Program-made: the position numbers and the translations under genes | The notes under the pieces: model-generated | Databases searched by the model: none | Seen by the model: the letters and a program-made list of their open reading frames with translations, nothing else | What the model was told of the DNA's origin: nothing | Part shown: positions 33,723-63,250 of the stretch, one piece after another | Numbering within the stretch: position 1 is the first letter of the stretch | How the letters are laid out: the number at the start of each line of letters is the position of its first letter | Sequence record: MK250017.1 | Reading direction: 5' to 3' (one strand) | Length of the DNA: 64,000 nt

Positions 33723-34100
33723 TTAAAGTTTCTCTACCAATGTATCAAGATTATCTATAGTAATTCCTTGAACATCGAATTCTATTTTATTATCATTAAT
33801 ATTTTTTACAGTTAATACACTATAATCATAATAAATCTTATCACCTACTGTAAGTTCAGAAGCTTTAACCATTTTAGATTCACCATAATTATGAGTTTCT
33901 CTACGGAATTCATCCATACCTTCAATTGTAATTGGACAAATAGCTTCATAATGTTCTAATATCCATTCTTTACTACAATTGCCAGATACAAATTCAGGAG
34001 CACCATAGCCTTTTGGCAATCCTAAATAGTCCTTTACTTTAGACATATTATCTACATATTCTGATGCCTTATGCCACTTTATATTATTATTTGTATTCAT
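33723..34100 (-). CDS. Hypothetical protein (putative early gene)
   Basis: 125-aa ORF downstream of a TATCTTTG promoter motif at 34141-34148. Confidence 0.65.
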   Translation of the reverse strand: MNTNNNIKWHKASEYVDNMSKVKDYLGLPKGYGAPEFVSGNCSKEWILEHYEAICPITIEGMDEFRRETHNYGESKMVKASELTVGDKIYYDYSVLTVKNINDNKIEFDVQGITIDNLDTLVEKL

Positions 34101-34140
34101 AATCTTTATTTTTTAATTGTTTATTATTTCATTAACAATA

Positions 34141-34148
34141 CAAAGATA
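34141..34148 (-). promoter_or_regulatory. Bacteroidota sigma-A type -7 promoter element
   Basis: Minus strand (TGTG)TATCTTTG matches the TAnnTTTG consensus; about 40 nt upstream of ATG 34100. Confidence 0.7.
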
Positions 34149-34223
34149 CACATTTTATTTCAAATAAAAAAATCTTGGATAAAAAAATATCCAAGATTTA
34201 AAATGATAATTTAAAAATAATAA

Positions 34224-36431
34224 TTAATTATATGTATTTTCATACTCCAATAGTTTTTCCTTAGCATATTCTATTGTTATATGAAGTTGTTTTTCATCAG
34301 TTGCTGGCATTTTATACATATCATCAGATAATAATGCTTCTACAATACCTCTTAAACCTCTTGCACCTAATTTATTCTTTATTGATAATTTAACAATATA
34401 ATCATATACATCATCATCAATAATAAGTTCAATACCATCTAATTCAAATAATTTTTTGAATTGTTTTATAATTGCATTCTTAGGTTCAATCAATATTCTT
34501 TTCAAATCTTCTTCTGATAATGGATTAAGATATGTAATAATTGGAAGACGTCCAATTAATTCCGGTATTAAACCAAAATTCTTAAAATCTTCAGCATTTG
34601 CATATTTAAGAATATTATTATTTTCTTTATCTTCTATATATTGTTTATTCTCATCTTTAGATATAAAACCTAATGAAGATTTATTCATACGTCTTTCAAT
34701 AATTTTATCTAAACCTACAAAAGCGCCTCCACAAATAAACAAAATATTTTTTGTATCAACTTGAACCATTTTTGCATCAGGATGTTTTCTGCCTCCCTTT
34801 GGCGGAACATTTACAACAGTACCTTCAATAATCTTAAGTAACGCTTGTTGAACACCTTCACCTGAAACATCTCTTGTTATAGACGGATTACCTCCAGACT
34901 TTCTTGCAATCTTATCACAATTACCAGTAACAGTAACAAAATTATTTTGACGAATCATTATCATACCGCTAGGAACAGTAACACAATATACATCATCAGT
35001 AAAATCTTTATATACTTTTAATAATTTACTGTGTTGAGACATATATTTTTTATTTTTTATTACACAACAATATGAAATATTATATCCTTTTTTATATCTA
35101 TTATGAATAGAACAACTCATACCAGAAGTATGAGCAATAGTTTGTATAAATAACATTTCATCTAATTTAGAACTTGTAAAATATATATTATCATTATAAT
35201 AATTTAATAATCCATCCCAATATCTTAATTCATTTAAGAATAATTTCTTTTGTCTTATAGATGCGGTTATTAAACAATCTAGACATAATGTTTTCTTTCC
35301 ATCCTTAAAAAATGGCATATTAGATATATCACCAAAATAAAAATTATGGTAACTATTTTTTTCATTAAATGTATATGTATATTTTATATGTAAATTATTT
35401 AATATTTCATTTAATCTATTATATTTTCGTTCTTTTTTAACGGTTAAATAACCATATTTACCATTTTTTATACAACCATCTGCAGCAAATGCCACTATAA
35501 ATTTTAACATATCATCAGATATATCTATATCATTTCCGTCAAAAATACCTGTAACCGGGAAATCATATCCTTGATTTAATGATTTTTCTGCAATTACTTT
35601 TTTAATTATATATTTATCTCTGTATTTGCCATGACTAATAACAACTCTATTATGATTTGGTGTAGATGTATGTATTATTTGACCTGTTTTTGAATTTTGC
35701 AATGATAATAATCCATTTAAACACTTATGCTTTACTATCCTTTCAGAATTTACTAATGACATTGTGCTATCACTATTCCATTGCATTATCTTTGTAGAAT
35801 CTGTTAAATCTTTAAAAGAAATAAAACCATTTTCCGTCATTACTTCAGTATTTCCATCAAAACATTCATCTAAGAATACTATGCCATGTTCTGCTTTCTT
35901 AACATCATAATCACATGCTTGGAGAAGTCTTGTAATAGAAGTTTCTACATCATCACCTACGTAACCTGCTTCTGTAATTGAATTGCAATCTACTATGCTA
36001 ATAGGCACATCTAACATTTTTGCAATTGATTTCACTAATAACGTTTTTCCAACACCAGTTTCCCCACAAAGTATGCAATTTGACTTCTCAATTTCAACAT
36101 CATCAAATCCTTTTTGCTTTATTCGTTTATAATGGTTATAAACTGCAACCGCTAATCTTTGTTTTGCTTTATCTTGCCCAATAACATATTGATCTAGGAA
36201 TTCTTTAATCTCTGTAGGTTTCTTTACATCATCTTTATGAAATTCATCTTCTGGTATAAAATTTGTATTATGATTAATTATACTAAGATTCATATTATAT
36301 ATTTGATCACAACACTCATTACATATACTACCAAATTCACCATTAAATAATAATGCAACATCTTTTTTTGTTTTACCACAAAATGAACATTTGTTTTCTT
36401 TATTTGTATCTTTATCTTTCTTAACTGCCAT
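34224..36431 (-). CDS. clpX: ClpX ATPase interrupted by an intein
   Basis: N-terminal CSFCGK/CNECC zinc-binding domain, YVIGQ, KSN, Walker [15 protein letters not shown], Walker [36 protein letters not shown]. Confidence 0.95.
34920..35864 (-). mobile_element. Intein (315 aa) with LAGLIDADG homing endonuclease
   Basis: Begins CFDGNTEV after Walker B DE; TSTPNH block B; FAADG and YWDG endonuclease motifs; VYCVTVPSG block F; ends VTGN before +1 Cys (CDKIARK). Confidence 0.9.
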
Positions 36432-36548
36432 AATTAAAAACTAAAACTTAAATAACTATAATAACAACATATATTATATATTATGTAATAAATAAAGTTT
36501 AAAAATAATACAAATAAATAACTAAGAACAAATTTATTAAAAAAAAGA

Positions 36549-37931
36549 ATGTAGACCATAAAAATTAAATATACAATAAACGATAATGATAAATTATTGC
36601 TTAATGATTATATTAGACAGTATAATCATGTATATCGTGTTGCATTTAATAATTTATAGTCACATAAGAAAAATAAATTATCCGAATTAACAAATTTAAA
36701 CAATATAGATTTATTAGATAGTTGGTTTATATAGTCTGCTAATTATGAAGTGAAAACTTTATATAAATTAGTTGGTGATAAAAAAGTTATATTTGGTGGA
36801 AGAAAAAACTTTATAAAAAGATGTTAGAATAAGATTTCATATGATGAATATAATTCTTATAGATTTCAACCATTATGTAGTTATGGTGAAAAGAAATCAG
36901 GTACGAAATCTGTTCATGGAAATAGAAAATTTAAATTATCAGATGACCTAATATTTATAACATTAAAATTAAAAGAAAGAAAAATTAAAATTAATCTACC
37001 AAAATATTTACATTCAAATATCAAATATATACTTAAAAATGTATATGTACACCAAATATTAGATGATACACCTATTACATATAAAATAGATTATAATTAT
37101 GTATATATTCAGTTTGATGAATCTGTAATTTTAAATAAAAATAATAATTTAGATAAAATATAGAATCGCGTATTATCATTAGATTTAAATCCTAATTATA
37201 TAGGTTGGTCTATAGTTGATTGGAAGTCAGAGAATGAATTCAATGTTATCAAATCAGGTGTTTATTCTATAAAGAATTTAAATGATAAAGTTTTTAATTT
37301 AAAAAATAAAGGTTACTCATCAGATTCTAGTGAAAGAAAATATATTTCAGATAAGCGTAATTTTGAGACAATATAGATAGTAAAGAATATAGTTAATAAA
37401 TCTATATATTATAAATGTCAACTTATTTCTATAGAGGATTTAAATATTAAATCTTCAGATTTTAATAAAGGTAAGCGACTCAATAAGTTAATTAATAATT
37501 CATGGTGTAGAAATACATTTGTAAATAATTTAACTAAAAGATGTAATATTCATAATATGAAATTATTAAAGGTTAAACCAGAATATTCAAGTTTTATTGG
37601 TAATTTCTTATATCGTTCATTAAATTTACCGGATATGATATTGGCTTCAATAGAAATAGGAAGACGAGGATATGAATTTTATAATCAATATATAAGTAAA
37701 GTAAAAGAAATTAAAAAGAATATAATAAAACCAGATCTAAATATGTTTAATAGATTGTATCTTAAGTCGTTGGAAGAATTTAAGTTACAACCAATATACA
37801 AAGATTTGATTGAATTATATTACTTCTTCAAAAAGTCTAAAATGATGTATAGACTTTCTATAGATTAGTTTAATCTATAGTTTTCTAGCTTATTTTCGAA
37901 TACTTCATATATAGGGTATTTTTGTTTTTAA
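36549..37931 (+). CDS. TnpB/Cas12f-like RuvC nuclease, 460 aa (code 15)
   Basis: Open from ATG 36549 to TAA 37929 with about 8 TAG; RuvC-I SLDLNPNYIG, RuvC-II ISIEDL, RuvC-III-like PDMILAS; N-terminal MQTIKIKY...YNHVYRVAFN. Confidence 0.7.
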
Positions 37932-38046
37932 AATTATACATAATGATATAGTTTATTAAAAAACATTATAAAATAAGTACATTATAGTCAAAAATTTGTT
38001 AATTGTTTATTTTATAAATAATAAAAGTAATCAGGTAATTAAATAT

Positions 38047-38862: not shown

Positions 38863-39150
38863 ATAATTAAAGAACTATTCTTTATACATTATATATATAA
38901 TAAAAAATAAAGTCTTAAATGAATAATTTAATTAAAATCATATTTTAAAAATAATTTCAATCTCTAAAATGATCTACCTTCTAAAAAAGAAAGAACNNNN
39001 NNNNNNNNNNNNNNNNNNNNNNNNNNNNNNNNNNNNNNNNNNNNNNNNNNNNNNNNNNNNNNNNNNNNNNNNNNNNNNTTTAAATAAAATTTTTATTTAA
39101 TTTTTTAAATATCTATCATTACCTTAATATCTTAATATTAATTATACTTG

Positions 39151-39515
39151 AGTTTTGTGAAAAAGTCTACATTTTTGTGAAAAAAGTTTAATAAAAATTA
39201 AAAATAATTTATAACTAATTGATAATCAATAATATTTATATGATAATTTATACAAATTCTAAATAATATTAATAAAAAATACTTACATTTCCGAAAAACT
39301 TACCTTACTAAATTCATTAAATAAATAGAATAAAAATTAAATTAAAATTACAAATTTAAAAATAAAATTTTTCATATATTATATATAGATCTATCACAAN
39401 NNNNNNNNNNNNNNNNNNNNNNNNNNNGGACTTTTGGGGAAAAGTCTACATTTTTGAGAAATATTTTTAATAAATTTTAAAAATAATTTATAAGTAATTG
39501 AAAATCAAATAATTT
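39151..39515. repeat. Imperfect ~85-bp direct repeat in AT-rich intergenic region next to N gaps
   Basis: aaaagtctacatttttg(t/a)gaaa...taaaaataatttataa(c/g)taattga(t/a)aatcaa at ~39161-39230 and ~39440-39510. Confidence 0.7.
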
Positions 39516-40292: not shown

Positions 40293-40468
40293 TAATGTAC
40301 GTGTACATTATATAGTATTAGAATGAGATATTTTCATTGTTACAGTATAAGTATACTGGATCAAGAAAAACATTAAAAAATTGAGAGATTTCTTATGTTT
40401 TTCTTATGTTTTTGAAGAAAAAATATAAGTTTTTTGAGATATTATTTTTTATTATGGAAAAATATGTG

Positions 40469-40476
40469 TATCTTTG
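40469..40476 (+). promoter_or_regulatory. Bacteroidota sigma-A type -7 promoter element
   Basis: TATCTTTG about 48 nt upstream of ATG 40524; upstream ttttattatggaaaa shared with the 58721 copy. Confidence 0.7.
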
Positions 40477-40523
40477 TATTGTGATTAAAAAATAAAAGAT
40501 ATAACAATTAAAAAATAAAAAAT

Positions 40524-41174
40524 ATGAGTACAATTAAAGATATTTTCGTTGGTAAGAAAACACGTAATTCAATCTATACAGCAGATGCTATTAAGAATCT
40601 GCTTGTGAAGATTGCATGTGGTAAGACAAAGTATAATCTTACTACAAAGACAGGTAAGAAGTGCTTCTACAATGAAGTTTATCATGCAATGAGCAAGTAT
40701 TTCATGTTGGATATTGTGAATAAGAATCTGAAAGAATTCGGTATTGGTTCTGAAGAATCACTTGCAACAGCATTTATCGATAATAAAGAATTTCTTATTA
40801 ATGAATGTAAGTTGAATCTTTCAGGTTTGGTTATTGAATCAAAATTTGAAAAGAAAGCAAAGGCATACATTAAGAAGTATGGAAATGGAATTGTACCGCC
40901 AACTGATGATAATGAATCTAAACTTTCAGATTTGGAACGTTGTGTTGTTGTACGAACAAAGTATGGTACACATGACCCGTTGATGTATACTATTAAAGGT
41001 GCATTAACAACAGATATTGCAGATAGTGTGAAAGCTATGTATGCATATGAATCAGGTTGTAATTATTATGAGGCTCGACCAATTCTTTATACTACATGGA
41101 TTAATCTTCCAGATGAATATAAAAATGCATCTCGTCCATGTGAAGAGGATGATTTGAAGAACGTAAATGAGTAA
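40524..41174 (+). CDS. Hypothetical protein (putative early gene)
   Basis: 216-aa TAG-free ORF after a host-type promoter, followed by a hairpin at ~41186-41226. Confidence 0.75.
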   Translation: MSTIKDIFVGKKTRNSIYTADAIKNLLVKIACGKTKYNLTTKTGKKCFYNEVYHAMSKYFMLDIVNKNLKEFGIGSEESLATAFIDNKEFLINECKLNLSGLVIESKFEKKAKAYIKKYGNGIVPPTDDNESKLSDLERCVVVRTKYGTHDPLMYTIKGALTTDIADSVKAMYAYESGCNYYEARPILYTTWINLPDEYKNASRPCEEDDLKNVNE

Positions 41175-59593: not shown

Positions 59594-59666
59594 GGTCCGT
59601 CTGGTGTAATTGGTAACATGGCAGATTGTGGTTCTGCAGTACAGGGTTCGAGTCCCTAACGTGACC
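59594..59666 (+). tRNA. tRNA-His(GTG), irregular acceptor stem
   Basis: gcaga-TTGTGGT-tctgc anticodon arm, D stem gtgt/acat, T loop TTCGAGT, G-1:C73; the acceptor pairs only with a bulge. Confidence 0.7.
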
Positions 59667-59736
59667 CAATTTATATTTTTAAGTAAACTATTGATATAGT
59701 TCTTAATATAATTATAAGAATATTTTATATTAATAT

Positions 59737-60744
59737 ATGGAAATTAAATAGTTTACAGATGATACATTAAAACATGTATTTGACACATGTACATCAACAA
59801 TGAATATATTGGAATTATTAGGTTATGAACCTTATAAAATAAGAGGATAGAAATGTAAAGAAATATTGAATATATATGCTAATTAGATTGGTGTCAATAT
59901 AGAAGATTATAAATCAAATAATATAAAATTTAGGAAATATAATGAATTACATCCTGTATGTAAAATATGTGGTAAAGACTTAACATATAAACAGTATAAA
60001 GATAAACAATCTTTTTGTTCATCATCATGTGCAGCTATTTATAATAATTAGCATAGAACTATTTCTAAAAAACAAAAAAGTATATTTTCTAAAAAATAGA
60101 GTATACGTTCTAAAAATGTTTATAAAGAAAAACCTAATTATGTATTAAATACGGAATTAATTAATCAAGGAAAAATATTAAATGATAAAAATATTCCATA
60201 TAAAGAACATTATATGGATATAACAAAATTAGGTGTACATATATGTCAAATATGTGGAAACGAATTTATACCATCTATTACATTAAAAGGTGATATATCA
60301 AAAGCTACAACATGTTCAGAAGAATGCCATAAAATTTTAGCAAGCAAACGTTCAAAACAAACTGTATAGCGTCTTATTAAAGAAGGCAGACATAGTGGCT
60401 GGGCATCTAGAAAAATTACAAGTTATCCAGAAAAATTTTGGATTAATGTATTAAATAATAATCATATAAATTTTATACGTGAATTTAAAGTAAAACAAAT
60501 TTCAGGTTATTGTTATTTTTTGGATTTTTTGATAGAACACAATGAACATAAAATTGATTTAGAAATAGATGGACAACAACATAAGTATAGAAAAGAACAT
60601 GATAAAGAACGAGATGAATATTTATCATCATTAAATTATTTAATATATAGAATTGATTGGAATAATATAAATACAGAAAATGGAAAATTATTAATGAAAG
60701 AAAAAATTGATAATTTTTTAAATTGGTTTAATAATTTGGAGTAA
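59737..60744 (+). CDS. Homing-type endonuclease (Vsr/DUF559-like) in tRNA cluster, 335 aa (code 15)
   Basis: Zinc motifs CKICG..FCSSSC and CQICG..TCSEEC; SYPEKFW..REF..YFLDF..LEIDGQQH..DKERD..IYRIDW. Confidence 0.75.
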
Positions 60745-60758
60745 AATTATTAAATTTA

Positions 60759-60831
60759 CGGGTAGTAGTTCAATTGGTAGAATGCTAGTTTTGGGAACTA
60801 GTGGTTGTAGGATCGTGCCCTATCTACCCGA
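60759..60831 (+). tRNA. tRNA-Pro(TGG)
   Basis: Acceptor cgggtag/ctacccg; ctagt-TTTGGGA-actag; atypical T loop ATCGTGC. Confidence 0.85.
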
Positions 60832-60949
60832 CGGAATCGATAAATCTGATATTATCCTTACGTAATTAATCAGATTTAAAACTTTAGATAGTAAGGTATC
60901 TATATAATGGAAGTTCACGCCTAAGGGAAGATTTATACATTATAATTTT

Positions 60950-61024
60950 ACTCTGTTAGCTCAATTGGATTAGAGTAATTCGCTACGAACGAATAGGTTA
61001 GGAGTTCGATTCTCTTACAGAGTA
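60950..61024 (+). tRNA. tRNA-Arg(ACG)
   Basis: actctgt/acagagt; attcg-CTACGAA-cgaat; T loop TTCGATT. Confidence 0.9.
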
Positions 61025-61031
61025 CAAATAT

Positions 61032-61104
61032 ATCTCTATAGTTTAAGTGAATAAAATAGGATTTTCCTAAATTCCAGTTACTGGTTTGATTCCAGTTAGA
61101 GATA
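61032..61104 (+). tRNA. tRNA-Arg(CCT)
   Basis: atctcta/tagagat; ggatt-TTCCTAA-attcc (one U-U pair); actgg-TTTGATT-ccagt. Confidence 0.7.
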
Positions 61105-61654
61105 CATTAATTATTTTGATAAAAAATAAGAGAAATATATAGACTTTTATTTGATTTCAACATATACATTATGTTAATTGGATGAACAGTTAATAATTAA
61201 TAATTAATAATAAAAATACTATTAAAATGTGGGGTTTTGAGTGCCCATCATTTAAAGAGTTTCGAGAAGAAGACATTGTATGTAAAAGCATTAAGTTTCA
61301 TTTAGCTGATGAAATGTAGTCAAGCGTGATGGTATCGATGTACATGGGTCCATCCGTATAACTTCGAGGAATCATAAGCATTAATCTTGGAGAGTACAGT
61401 TTTTAGTCTGAAATGACGAATTTTCCTACTGGTTGCTCAATATGACATTAAGAGTCGGAGATAATTATTTGTAAGTTCCACAATTACAAGAGGAAAATGG
61501 AATTAAGTTGTCGGAATAACGTGATTATTCTATGTGCGAGTAAGAAAATGAAAGTAGCATTATATGTATGGTGTACGTATACATATAGAAACAAAGCAAA
61601 TAATAACCCTTAGAGAATTTGCCGAGAAAAGGACATTAATAGTATTTATAATTT

Positions 61655-61725
61655 GCGGGTATAGCACAATGGTAGTGTTCCAGTCTTCCAAACTGGCAAT
61701 GTCGGTTCGATTCCGATTACCCGCT
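61655..61725 (+). tRNA. tRNA-Gly(TCC)
   Basis: gcgggta/tacccgc with U73; ccagt-CTTCCAA-actgg; T loop TTCGATT. Confidence 0.95.
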
Positions 61726-62023
61726 CAAAGATAAAATTAGGTATACATAATTTTGTATCGAAGCTTTATATTACCATTAGTCGTAATATTCAAATCGTTC
61801 GTTGACATGGTTATTCCGTGATGTTAGTAGTAAGTTATAATCAATTTATAGCAAACGGAATATTAATAAAAACGTACTCGGCGTTTAAGTTGAATGTACC
61901 ACGCTGCCCGTATTGTTGACATTTAATTAAGTATTTAATTAAGTTGAAACATATGTTTAAAAAACTTATGGTACCACGAGTGTTTTCTACGTCGTTTCAC
62001 TCATTTTTTTGATATAATAATAT

Positions 62024-62083
62024 ATGAGAGTCATAACAGCAAATTTAGTTCTATTGTTTATTGGGATAACATAAGACTCTTGA
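62024..62083 (+). ncRNA. ACAGCAA stem / anticodon-loop element B (Pro-like UGG loop)
   Basis: ATGAGAGTC-ATAACAGCAAATT...tgttt-ATTGGGA-taaca-taa-GACTCTTG. Confidence 0.55.
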
Positions 62084-62097
62084 ATCAATTATATTAG

Positions 62098-62159
62098 GGG
62101 AGATATTACAGCAAATTATTATTTAGGATCATACTTTTAATATGAAATTCTTGTCTCCT
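62098..62159 (+). ncRNA. ACAGCAA stem / anticodon-loop element C (Lys-like UUU loop)
   Basis: GGGAGATA-TTACAGCAAATT...tcata-CTTTTAA-tatga...TGTCTCCT; perfect 5-bp + 7-nt anticodon arm. Confidence 0.55.
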
Positions 62160-62167
62160 GTTTATTT

Positions 62168-62247
62168 GGGTAAATGCCTGAGTGGTCGAAGGGAATGGTC
62201 TGCAAAACCATTATTATACGTCGTGTGTTCGAATCACACTTTACCCT
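62168..62247 (+). tRNA. tRNA-Cys(GCA) with enlarged variable region
   Basis: gggtaaa/tttaccc with U73; atggt-CTGCAAA-accat; ~11-nt variable region; T loop TTCGAAT. Confidence 0.85.
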
Positions 62248-62576
62248 CTAATATAAAATATTTCCGTGGTATACAGCACGTAAAAAGAGGTTGACTTGTA
62301 TATTCTATAGACCTACTGTATAATAATATATATGATGTACATGTGAAACACCATGTTCTATTAAGAGTTTAATAAAACTGTGGTTGTTATTAAATTGCAC
62401 TGATATTAGATGCATAATATATGATGAATATAATGACGGTACTGTGAAATGACTATTATTTTTAGTTGCTTGGAAACGGCGTACGAAGTTTTTATAATAG
62501 TGGAAGTAATGATAAAACAGTTAAATGTAAATCTTTCTGAGACAATGGGGACAACTTGTAGTAAGAGAGTATTTTT

Positions 62577-62680
62577 GTTGATATAGTTTAATGGGAAAAC
62601 ACCCAAATCCCAGGGATAAGAGATAATACTTTGAAATAGGTATTAGAAGATTTTAGATGGTTCGATTCCATTTATCAACT
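62577..62680 (+). ncRNA. tRNA-like RNA 1 with expanded anticodon domain
   Basis: Acceptor gttgata/tatcaac, D arm gttt-aatggga-aaac, T arm gatgg-TTCGATT-ccatt; 54 nt between D and T arms. Confidence 0.6.
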
Positions 62681-62689
62681 CAAATTAAT

Positions 62690-62810
62690 GAAGTGTGTAG
62701 TTTAATTGGTAAAATATCCTTTGAATAGGACTGTGCGCAGATAGAACATAATGTTAGTCATATTAATCGCATTATTGATAATGATGTTGGTTCGATTCCA
62801 ACGACACTTC
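62690..62810 (+). ncRNA. tRNA-like RNA 2 with expanded anticodon domain
   Basis: Acceptor gaagtgt/acacttc, D arm gttt-aattggta-aaat, T arm gttgg-TTCGATT-ccaac; 69 nt between D and T arms. Confidence 0.6.
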
Positions 62811-63096
62811 CTAATAAATAAAAAGATCTCGGTAATTAGATAAAACATTATATGAGTGAAGCAACTCACCATAACTGCAGATAAATGAGTGAGGGACATA
62901 AGAGTGTATGAAGAAAGATGGACTATGGACACCACCATATAATTGCGTTTTCAATAATAGTAAAGTAAACTTTAGTATAAGTTCCATTAACGCTAAAATA
63001 GAAACATTGTTATTGAAGTCTACTATGCGTGCGATGGTTGAATGAAACCATTGTAGTTCTAAGGCATTGTAAAACGTTTTATTTATTAATTTTTAT

Positions 63097-63170
63097 GGCG
63101 AGATAGCTTAGTTGGTCAGAGCGCAGGATTCATATCCCTGAGGTCGTGTGTTCAAATCACACTTTCGCTA
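63097..63170 (+). tRNA. tRNA-Met(CAT), elongator type (Ile2 not excluded)
   Basis: ggcgaga/tttcgct; cagga-TTCATAT-ccctg; G1-U72 pair, so not an initiator. Confidence 0.85.
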
Positions 63171-63250
63171 CTATTATTTTTTGATTGTTTATTTTTATAA
63201 GAGGTATATCATTTTTTGGTATATCTCTTTTTTATTTAGGAAATAATGTG

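Follow-up and report, generated by a model that had tools for sequence, protein, structure and literature searches.

The 64,000-nt stretch of DNA analysed here (the window) comes from the Prevotella megaphage Lak-A1 and has identical coordinates in its sequence record, MK250017.1. On its plus strand lies tnpB, a 460-codon open reading frame (ORF) that encodes a TnpB-type nuclease of a large, phage-borne, zinc-finger-less branch. The gene belongs to a multi-copy IS607-family element with defined ends, which is polymorphic for presence and absence. The unit in the window (36479-37986) is probably a non-autonomous element of this family, with a TnpB nuclease of the OMEGA type as its sole gene and RNA-guided homing as its likely action. 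Upstream, clpX diverges from tnpB, as an earlier prediction made from the sequence (the original prediction) had stated; that prediction ran to 38046, where the next gene starts, and thus overshot the ends of both the ORF (37931) and the element (37986).

A recoded TnpB gene without a zinc ribbon

Only with TAG as a sense codon does the tnpB frame stay open. It holds TAGs at codons 2, 37, 62, 93, 205, 276, 440 and 444, and under table 11 its biggest fragment is 103 aa. Because TAA and TGA make up about 5.7% of the frame's codons, an open frame of 460 codons lies far beyond chance (~e^-26); the G+C content of the window is 26.6%. Reading TAG as sense raises the DNA under window ORFs of at least 150 aa from 38 to 58 kb. 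Glutamine is the most enriched residue at TAG columns among 36 standard-code homologs (3.2x background), TAG codon 2 aligns with CAA in the Lak paralogs, and CAG is rarer in recoded family members (3.2 vs 10.6 per 1000 codons), where TAG reaches 23.5 per 1000. TAG in tnpB is read as glutamine, as the genome itself shows, and the gene is translatable only under this assignment, from codon 2 on. In the description of the Lak phages (10.1101/356790), code 15 (TAG=Gln) is inferred, and a suppressor tRNA with the anticodon CUA as well as the release factor RF2 are reported. A tRNA cluster at 59594-63171 of the window comprises seven genes (His, Pro, Arg x2, Gly, Cys, Met), none with a CUA anticodon, and the reported suppressor tRNA therefore sits outside the window.

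With 1.74 TAG per 100 codons, tnpB falls in the TAG-rich class of window ORFs, 18 of 40 of which are TAG-free, including the neighbouring clpX. Its relatives from recoded phages hold 7-15 TAGs and standard-code relatives none, which argues for long adaptation to the recoded genome. The original prediction had described an ORF with about eight TAGs, codon 2 among them, that is invisible in the standard code, dependent on the code switch for its expression and long resident in a recoded genome; all of this is borne out, with a count of exactly eight.

Standard domain models contribute little to the identification of the protein. Pfam and PHROGs scans gave nothing useful, and the NCBIfam models TIGR01765 and TIGR01766 match below cut-off (20.9 and 18.5 bits). 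Three weak matches from NCBIfam and PADLOC are concordant: a TnpB N-terminal domain (aa 3-58), a TnpB-related domain (aa 275-348) and the Cas12b RuvC region. An exhaustive phmmer search yields 954 clusters at 50% identity, mostly 430-470 aa long and 264 of them with E<1e-30, and, at the 90% identity level, over 2,600 clusters with E<=1e-10. The family is concentrated in large phages, mostly on contigs of 100-670 kb. Some homologs (P0160, P0167, P0010 and others) carry the precomputed Pfam accession PF27229, and a newer Pfam release may already model the family.

Profile and structural comparisons, which the original prediction had proposed as a check, place the protein with TnpB and Cas12f. 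A phmmer search of the window protein against PDB sequences found no match; a profile of the family reaches Cas12f and TnpB-type PDB chains (E 7e-4), in an alignment that spans RuvC-II to YSS/YTSQ and ends where their zinc ribbon starts. Structural comparison matches the model to Cas12f (score 17.8, model residues 1-398), Cas12k (16.9, residues 1-381) and ISDra2 TnpB (16.1, residues 1-379), and within it residues 206-383 to bacterial RuvC (12.5; 2.8 Å over 143 residues); the C-terminal ~60-80 aa find no match. By this comparison, the WED-REC-RuvC fold of TnpB and Cas12f is present in the window protein. Residues D212, E296, D362, R372 and R373 are invariant in a 45-member alignment, and the family profile aligns E296 with the EDL motif of the Cas12f chains. 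The three acidic residues correspond to the RuvC-like motifs originally predicted.

The zinc ribbon sets this branch apart. In ISDra2 TnpB and Cas12f (8exa, 8h1j, 7wju, 9nzs), which are about 12-13% identical to the window TnpB, a CCCC zinc ribbon (TNB domain) separates RuvC-II from RuvC-III, whereas the window TnpB has a linker of 13-17 residues and no CxxC there, in line with the predicted lack of CxxC pairs around RuvC-III. In 176 of 176 parsed homologs, a CxxC-free YSS-to-Asp linker of 13-20 residues stands in place of the ribbon, and none has two CxxC motifs at any position. Loss of the zinc finger is on record for some TnpB branches (PMC10691335), so its absence does not exclude TnpB membership. 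Among these, the RIIIr-4 clade is zinc-finger-less, enriched in viruses and marked by an Asp->His change in RuvC-III (Altae-Tran et al. 2023, PMC10691335); membership was rejected, as the RuvC-III Asp (D362) is invariant here. A CRISPR association of the Cas12f/type V kind was also rejected: Cas12f has a CRISPR array, while no repeat-spacer array lies in 30-45 kb, as had been foreseen, and the neighbours are clpX and small ORFs.

The ratio of nonsynonymous to synonymous substitution rates (dN/dS) is 0.11 (dS 0.40) between the window tnpB and its 90% relative, and 0.07-0.23 in five other pairs; these low values indicate that the protein is under purifying selection. The gene is also mosaic. Residues 1-210 (36549-37180) are 30-50% identical to other Lak copies and residues 211-460 (37181-37931) 80-100%, a pattern which suggests that the RuvC/RNA half may have been exchanged between element lineages.

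Ends, copies and empty sites of the element

Comparison of empty and filled loci among Lak phages, as originally proposed, fixes the ends of the element at 36479 and 37986. In G001, the nearest genome compared (416 kb, 61% shared words), both flanks are 93-99% identical and tnpB is missing. The empty site reads ATTATA followed directly by GTCAAAAAT; the window has 1,508 bp between these halves, terminating in ...ACATTATA. ATTATA is host DNA, because the empty site has it as well. No tnpB occurs anywhere in the 416 kb of G001. Lak-C1 shares the window insertion at 99% identity, and Lak-B4 matches the flanks only.

Further copies show the same boundaries. Two that are 90-91% identical (L024, L025) occupy other sites, both in a Lak-like contig of 553 kb; the stretch that they share with the window begins and ends at identical bases, and the DNA beyond is unrelated. 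ATTATA lies 5′ of the element in both, and the same hexamer forms the element's last 6 nt. Full-length copies number three in Lak-A1 itself (36.5, 242 and 537 kb), and each contains 8-11 TAGs. The 242-kb copy is absent from G001 too; the junction there reads GTGTA-TAA-TATTAAG, and here as well the right end of the element repeats the final bases of its left flank. This short core common to target and right end may be the trace of a serine-recombinase crossover. In other large phages, seven subfamilies consist of TnpB-only units of ~1.5 kb, whose copies, when compared between loci, have only ~70-125 nt before the ATG and ~40-65 nt past the stop in common. The leader in the window contains a conserved box, CAAATAAATAAC, at about 36511-36522; in these subfamilies the box has the consensus (T)AGATAAATAAT, and an A-rich tail ends in a TACA(A/T)T-like motif. 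The box is possibly a promoter or a TnpA site.

The neighbourhood of tnpB in the window, formed by clpX and small ORFs, contains no tnpA, and Lak-A1 has no Y1 transposase. Its single gene with a resolvase domain, an ORF of 201 aa that contains 7 TAGs, lies 51 nt upstream of the tnpB copy at 537 kb. Across the full model length, this tnpA reaches 168.7 bits with NF033518 'IS607 family transposase' (cut-off 110); it is located outside the window, ~41 kb from the window's tnpB, adjoining the paralogous copy. The original description of the locus as lacking a transposase is thus true of the window copy only, because Lak-A1 encodes an IS607 transposase beside another copy. This tnpA and the resolvase-like TnpA fragment next to the ISCaje4 tnpB identify the family as IS607-type, and the window copy is therefore a non-autonomous derivative, potentially movable in trans. 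The complete IS607-type element occupies ~536.8-538.9 kb of MK250017.1 (L103, L016), with 7 TAGs in tnpA and 10 in tnpB. Lak-A2 (L112) has the same element minus tnpA and the 5′ part of tnpB, plus ~630 nt extra near the right end; in G001 (L114/L115), about 688 nt of other DNA replaces it.

ISCaje4, annotated in Campylobacter phage CP220 (Timms et al. 2010, PMC2853527) and labelled IS200/IS605 family in ISfinder, is a registered member of the family. Its TnpB is 43% identical to that of the window over 95% of its length and is phage-borne too. ISCaje4 is a 1,714-bp element with a resolvase-like TnpA fragment in cis, whereas the window element has no tnpA; it also uses the standard code (0 TAGs) and comes from a different host phylum. 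No functional study of ISCaje4 exists, so that it supplies a name and not a mechanism. Beyond this member and the known loss of the zinc finger in TnpB branches, what appears to differ here is the retained Asp together with the lack of RAGATH-18 and of a G-rich target-adjacent motif (TAM). No paper tying TnpB or IS607 to Lak phages was found in the literature, and the Lak preprint (10.1101/356790) does not mention transposases.

Other features of the window lie around the element. clpX, which has no TAG codon, carries a ~300-aa insert (about 34917-35865) that divides its AAA+ domain, so that Pfam AAA_2 matches in two stretches. The insert, of ~950 bp, is precisely missing in the sister phage G001; it resembles an intein-type mobile insertion, and Hint and LAGLIDADG are unmatched at E<=1e-3. 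An intergenic repeat of ~90 nt has two mutually inverted window copies (34080-34187 and 40430-40543), and over 30 related copies are spread across G001 on both strands. An AT-rich repeat of ~80-150 nt occurs twice (39082-39229 and 39360-39508, 279 nt apart), and several more copies are found in G001.

Table 1. Positions in the window of the element, its parts and the adjoining genes
Feature	Coordinates	Strand	Basis or content
clpX	34224..36431	-	Diverges from tnpB
5′ flanking motif ATTATA, candidate TAM or recombination core	36473..36478	+	Present in the empty site too
Whole element, 1,508 bp, tnpB only	36479..37986	+	Exact shared ends of three insertions; precise absence from G001 flanks
Left end and 5′ leader, 70 nt	36479..36548	+	Alignments of element copies, seven subfamilies
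tnpB ORF	36549..37931	+	460 aa, TAA stop
TnpB domains: WED/REC ~aa 1-205, RuvC ~aa 206-383		+	Catalytic D212 37182-37184, E296 37434-37436, D362 37632-37634
Candidate omegaRNA scaffold	37806..37986	+	3′ end of the ORF and 55-nt tail 37932-37986, terminating ...AAGUACAUUAUA
Hairpin H1, AAGUCUA ... UAGACUU	37833..37856; arms 37833-37839, 37850-37856	+	Overlaps codons K-S-K...Y-R-L
Hairpin H2, CUAUAGAU ... AUCUAUAG	37858..37880; arms 37858-37865, 37873-37880	+	Conserved GUUUUCUAG next
Predicted guide or target-matching flank GTCAAAAATTTGTTAATTGT	37987..38006	+	First non-conserved base past the right end, three insertions
Small downstream gene	begins at 38046		

A candidate omegaRNA and its predicted guide

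The 3′ part of tnpB and the tail behind it form a candidate omegaRNA. The tail is conserved as far as the right end at 37986, where similarity stops in three insertions, and this mapped end places the predicted guide at 37987 onward, within the 37800-38046 range originally proposed. A guide length of 16-20 nt is an assumption from known TnpBs. In the empty site, the guide-equivalent sequence lies directly 3′ of ATTATA. The flank from 37987 may act as the guide.

Around the conserved K..YR codons, nearly every family member can form two hairpins, H1 and H2, whose stem sequences differ. With a MAFFT alignment of 53 distinct sequences, built from sequence alone, RNAalifold recovers H1; with a second alignment of this kind it recovers both H1 and H2. 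Standard pairs fill 86.6% of the paired cells, against 65.1 +/- 1.1% in shuffles (0/500 as high), 160 cells are changed on both sides (shuffles, 49 +/- 6), and the covariation score is 0.544, with slid registers reaching <=0.174. H1 is 97.8% paired across the 53 sequences and six of its seven pairs covary; one of them joins the third position of a Ser codon with the first position of an Arg codon (UA 33 / GC 18), and both changes are synonymous. All eight pairs of H2 covary with double-sided changes. G.U pairs outnumber A.C pairs 61 to 27 where column composition expects 83 to 58, an excess that gives modest support to a sense-strand RNA. A covariance model matches the window at 37806-37919. 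Its matches are tnpB 3′ ends only, always on the sense strand and including members outside the training set, and it finds no orphan copy of the motif in the window (1-36463 and 36500-64000).

Codons 440 and 444, both TAG, sit within H2, where recoded members have CUA...UAG and standard-code relatives CUC...GAG or CUU...AAG; these swaps show that the recoded codon participates in the covarying stem. The same two-hairpin motif occurs at the 3′ end of the ISCaje4 tnpB (L065). Additional sense-strand matches lie upstream of the main tnpB at L046:2031-2144 and L098:1485-1601, and may be element remnants or orphan RNA modules. High DNA identity among the Lak copies in their final ~230 nt was rejected as an RNA signature, as identity of 80-100% extends over the entire C-terminal half and the copy is mosaic.

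The element resembles IS607 OMEGA systems in the full IS607 TnpA beside a paralog, in its scarless presence and absence, in the core common to target and right end, and in a putatively structured 3′ region that overlaps the ORF. For characterised IS607 TnpBs, RAGATH-18-type RNAs and G-rich TAMs (AGGAG/GAGGG) are reported (PMC13565253). The Lak element is unlike these in its AT-rich flanks (ATTATA / GTATAA), in having no RAGATH-18 match and in lacking the zinc ribbon.

The protein could alternatively be an RNA-independent RuvC-type endonuclease that acts in protein-only homing or recombination, the hairpins being recombinase DNA signals, a terminator or attenuator, or a means of translational control. 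The missing zinc ribbon, the superposition of residues 206-383 on bacterial RuvC at 2.8 Å, the terminator-like U-run (GUUUUC) after H2 and the lack of an Rfam match fit such an enzyme. However, its first 200 residues correspond to the WED/REC lobes, which in TnpB and Cas12f hold the guide RNA (model range 1-398), and the tolerance of G.U over A.C favours a sense-strand RNA. The hairpins moreover lie ~100-150 nt inside the right end, the usual place of TnpB omegaRNA scaffolds, and unrelated sequence follows that end exactly as in guide-bearing IS elements. An enzyme working without RNA is therefore considered unlikely.

Proposed mechanism and significance

In the mechanism proposed for this non-autonomous IS607-family element, a transcript running through the 3′ end of tnpB would be processed to an omegaRNA with its scaffold from ~37806/37833 to 37986 and its guide from 37987. 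The TnpB-RNA complex would recognise an AT-rich TATA(A)-type motif together with the sequence of the right flank, a combination that corresponds to the empty or excised site, as seen in G001. TnpB may then cut this site, and through recombination with a genome copy that bears the element, the latter would be restored or spread. The outcome would be restorative homing, or a homing drive among phage genomes during replication or co-infection. To reach new sites, the element would rely on TnpA supplied in trans from the complete copy. A restorative cutting model is established for IS605 and IS607 TnpBs (review PMC13565253).

Several observations weigh against this proposal. Pfam TnpB models match neither the window protein nor 45 homologs, and loss of the zinc ribbon could impair the loading of DNA into RuvC. 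Signs of very recent transposition are missing, since copies within one genome differ by at least 9%. Evidence for the target motif comes from two independent empty sites and two related insertions, and TATA-like words are common at 27% G+C. Folded as a single sequence, 37760-37986 does not outperform shuffles (z -1.1), with neither strand significant, and Rfam has no relevant match, RAGATH-18 included (E<=10). H1 and H2 lie inside coding sequence, and their conservation therefore partly reflects protein constraint; likewise, the covariance model scores coding similarity too, and thus demonstrates specificity without proving an RNA independently. Each subfamily has, between H2 and the right end, its own set of hairpins with apparent compensatory changes, which cannot be aligned across subfamilies, and RNAalifold run from H1 to the right end gives no consensus for the tail.

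It is quite unlikely that TnpB has been exapted to serve the phage, as a guide-RNA-directed repressor of the TldR/Cas12m type or as a weapon against competing phages or the host, and is no longer a transposon gene. Such a role would agree with the missing transposase beside the window copy, with the concentration of the family in large phages and with the position between clpX and a small gene, where a guide into 37987+ would match a promoter-proximal region. Yet transposon ends are present, paralogs occupy unrelated loci, and the guide-equivalent flank is different at every copy. The gene is also dispensable, since Lak-B4 and G001 lack it at this site and G001 lacks it altogether. TldRs are nuclease-dead, and they, like Cas12m and Cas12k, show loss of catalytic residues and a fixed position at functional loci, whereas the window TnpB is mobile and keeps its triad; TldR membership was rejected since the triad is invariant and the locus polymorphic (G001 and Lak-B4 empty). 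With the D-E-D triad invariant and a dN/dS of 0.11, a repressor role is unlikely. From the original proposal of a phage-adapted RNA-guided nuclease or repressor, the TnpB/Cas12f fold and the triad stand and RNA guidance is what we infer; the stand-alone gene gives way to an IS607-family element, and the repressor becomes unlikely.

A stranded, non-functional copy whose ORF is intact merely through recent insertion is very improbable: although it has no transposase in cis, its nearest copies are at least 9% diverged and its N-terminal half is mosaic relative to other Lak copies, it retains a full-length ORF with every invariant residue, a dN/dS of 0.11 against a copy at dS 0.40, eight TAGs where siblings have Gln codons, which imply long in-frame evolution, and a counterpart at 99% identity in Lak-C1.

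For the IS607-family element as favoured here, tnpA (7 TAGs) and tnpB (8-12 TAGs) are both recoded, so it can be expressed only while phage TAG suppression is active. A bolder version, which we regard as possible but rather doubtful, is a 'code-locked' gene drive: an IS607-type OMEGA element that would be translated only in a TAG=Gln Lak infection and would spread through replicating or co-infecting Lak genomes via RNA-guided cuts of empty sites, with a zinc-finger-less TnpB, an AT-rich TAM and a new omegaRNA class whose stems have co-evolved with their TAG codons.

Our analysis indicates that transposons of stop-codon-recoded phages are themselves recoded, transposase and nuclease alike, which ties the activity of the element to the code switch of the phage. 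Such recoded elements are long-term residents of the Lak lineage. They also reveal an extensive TnpB branch, which comprises at least 954 clusters at 50% identity and is missed by standard Pfam models, with a clean RuvC and under strong purifying selection. Lacking the zinc ribbon, this branch offers a natural experiment on the requirement for the TNB domain, and it is a possible source of editors with AT-rich TAMs. With mapped ends, empty sites and a predicted guide, the hypothesis of RNA-guided homing in these phages becomes directly testable.
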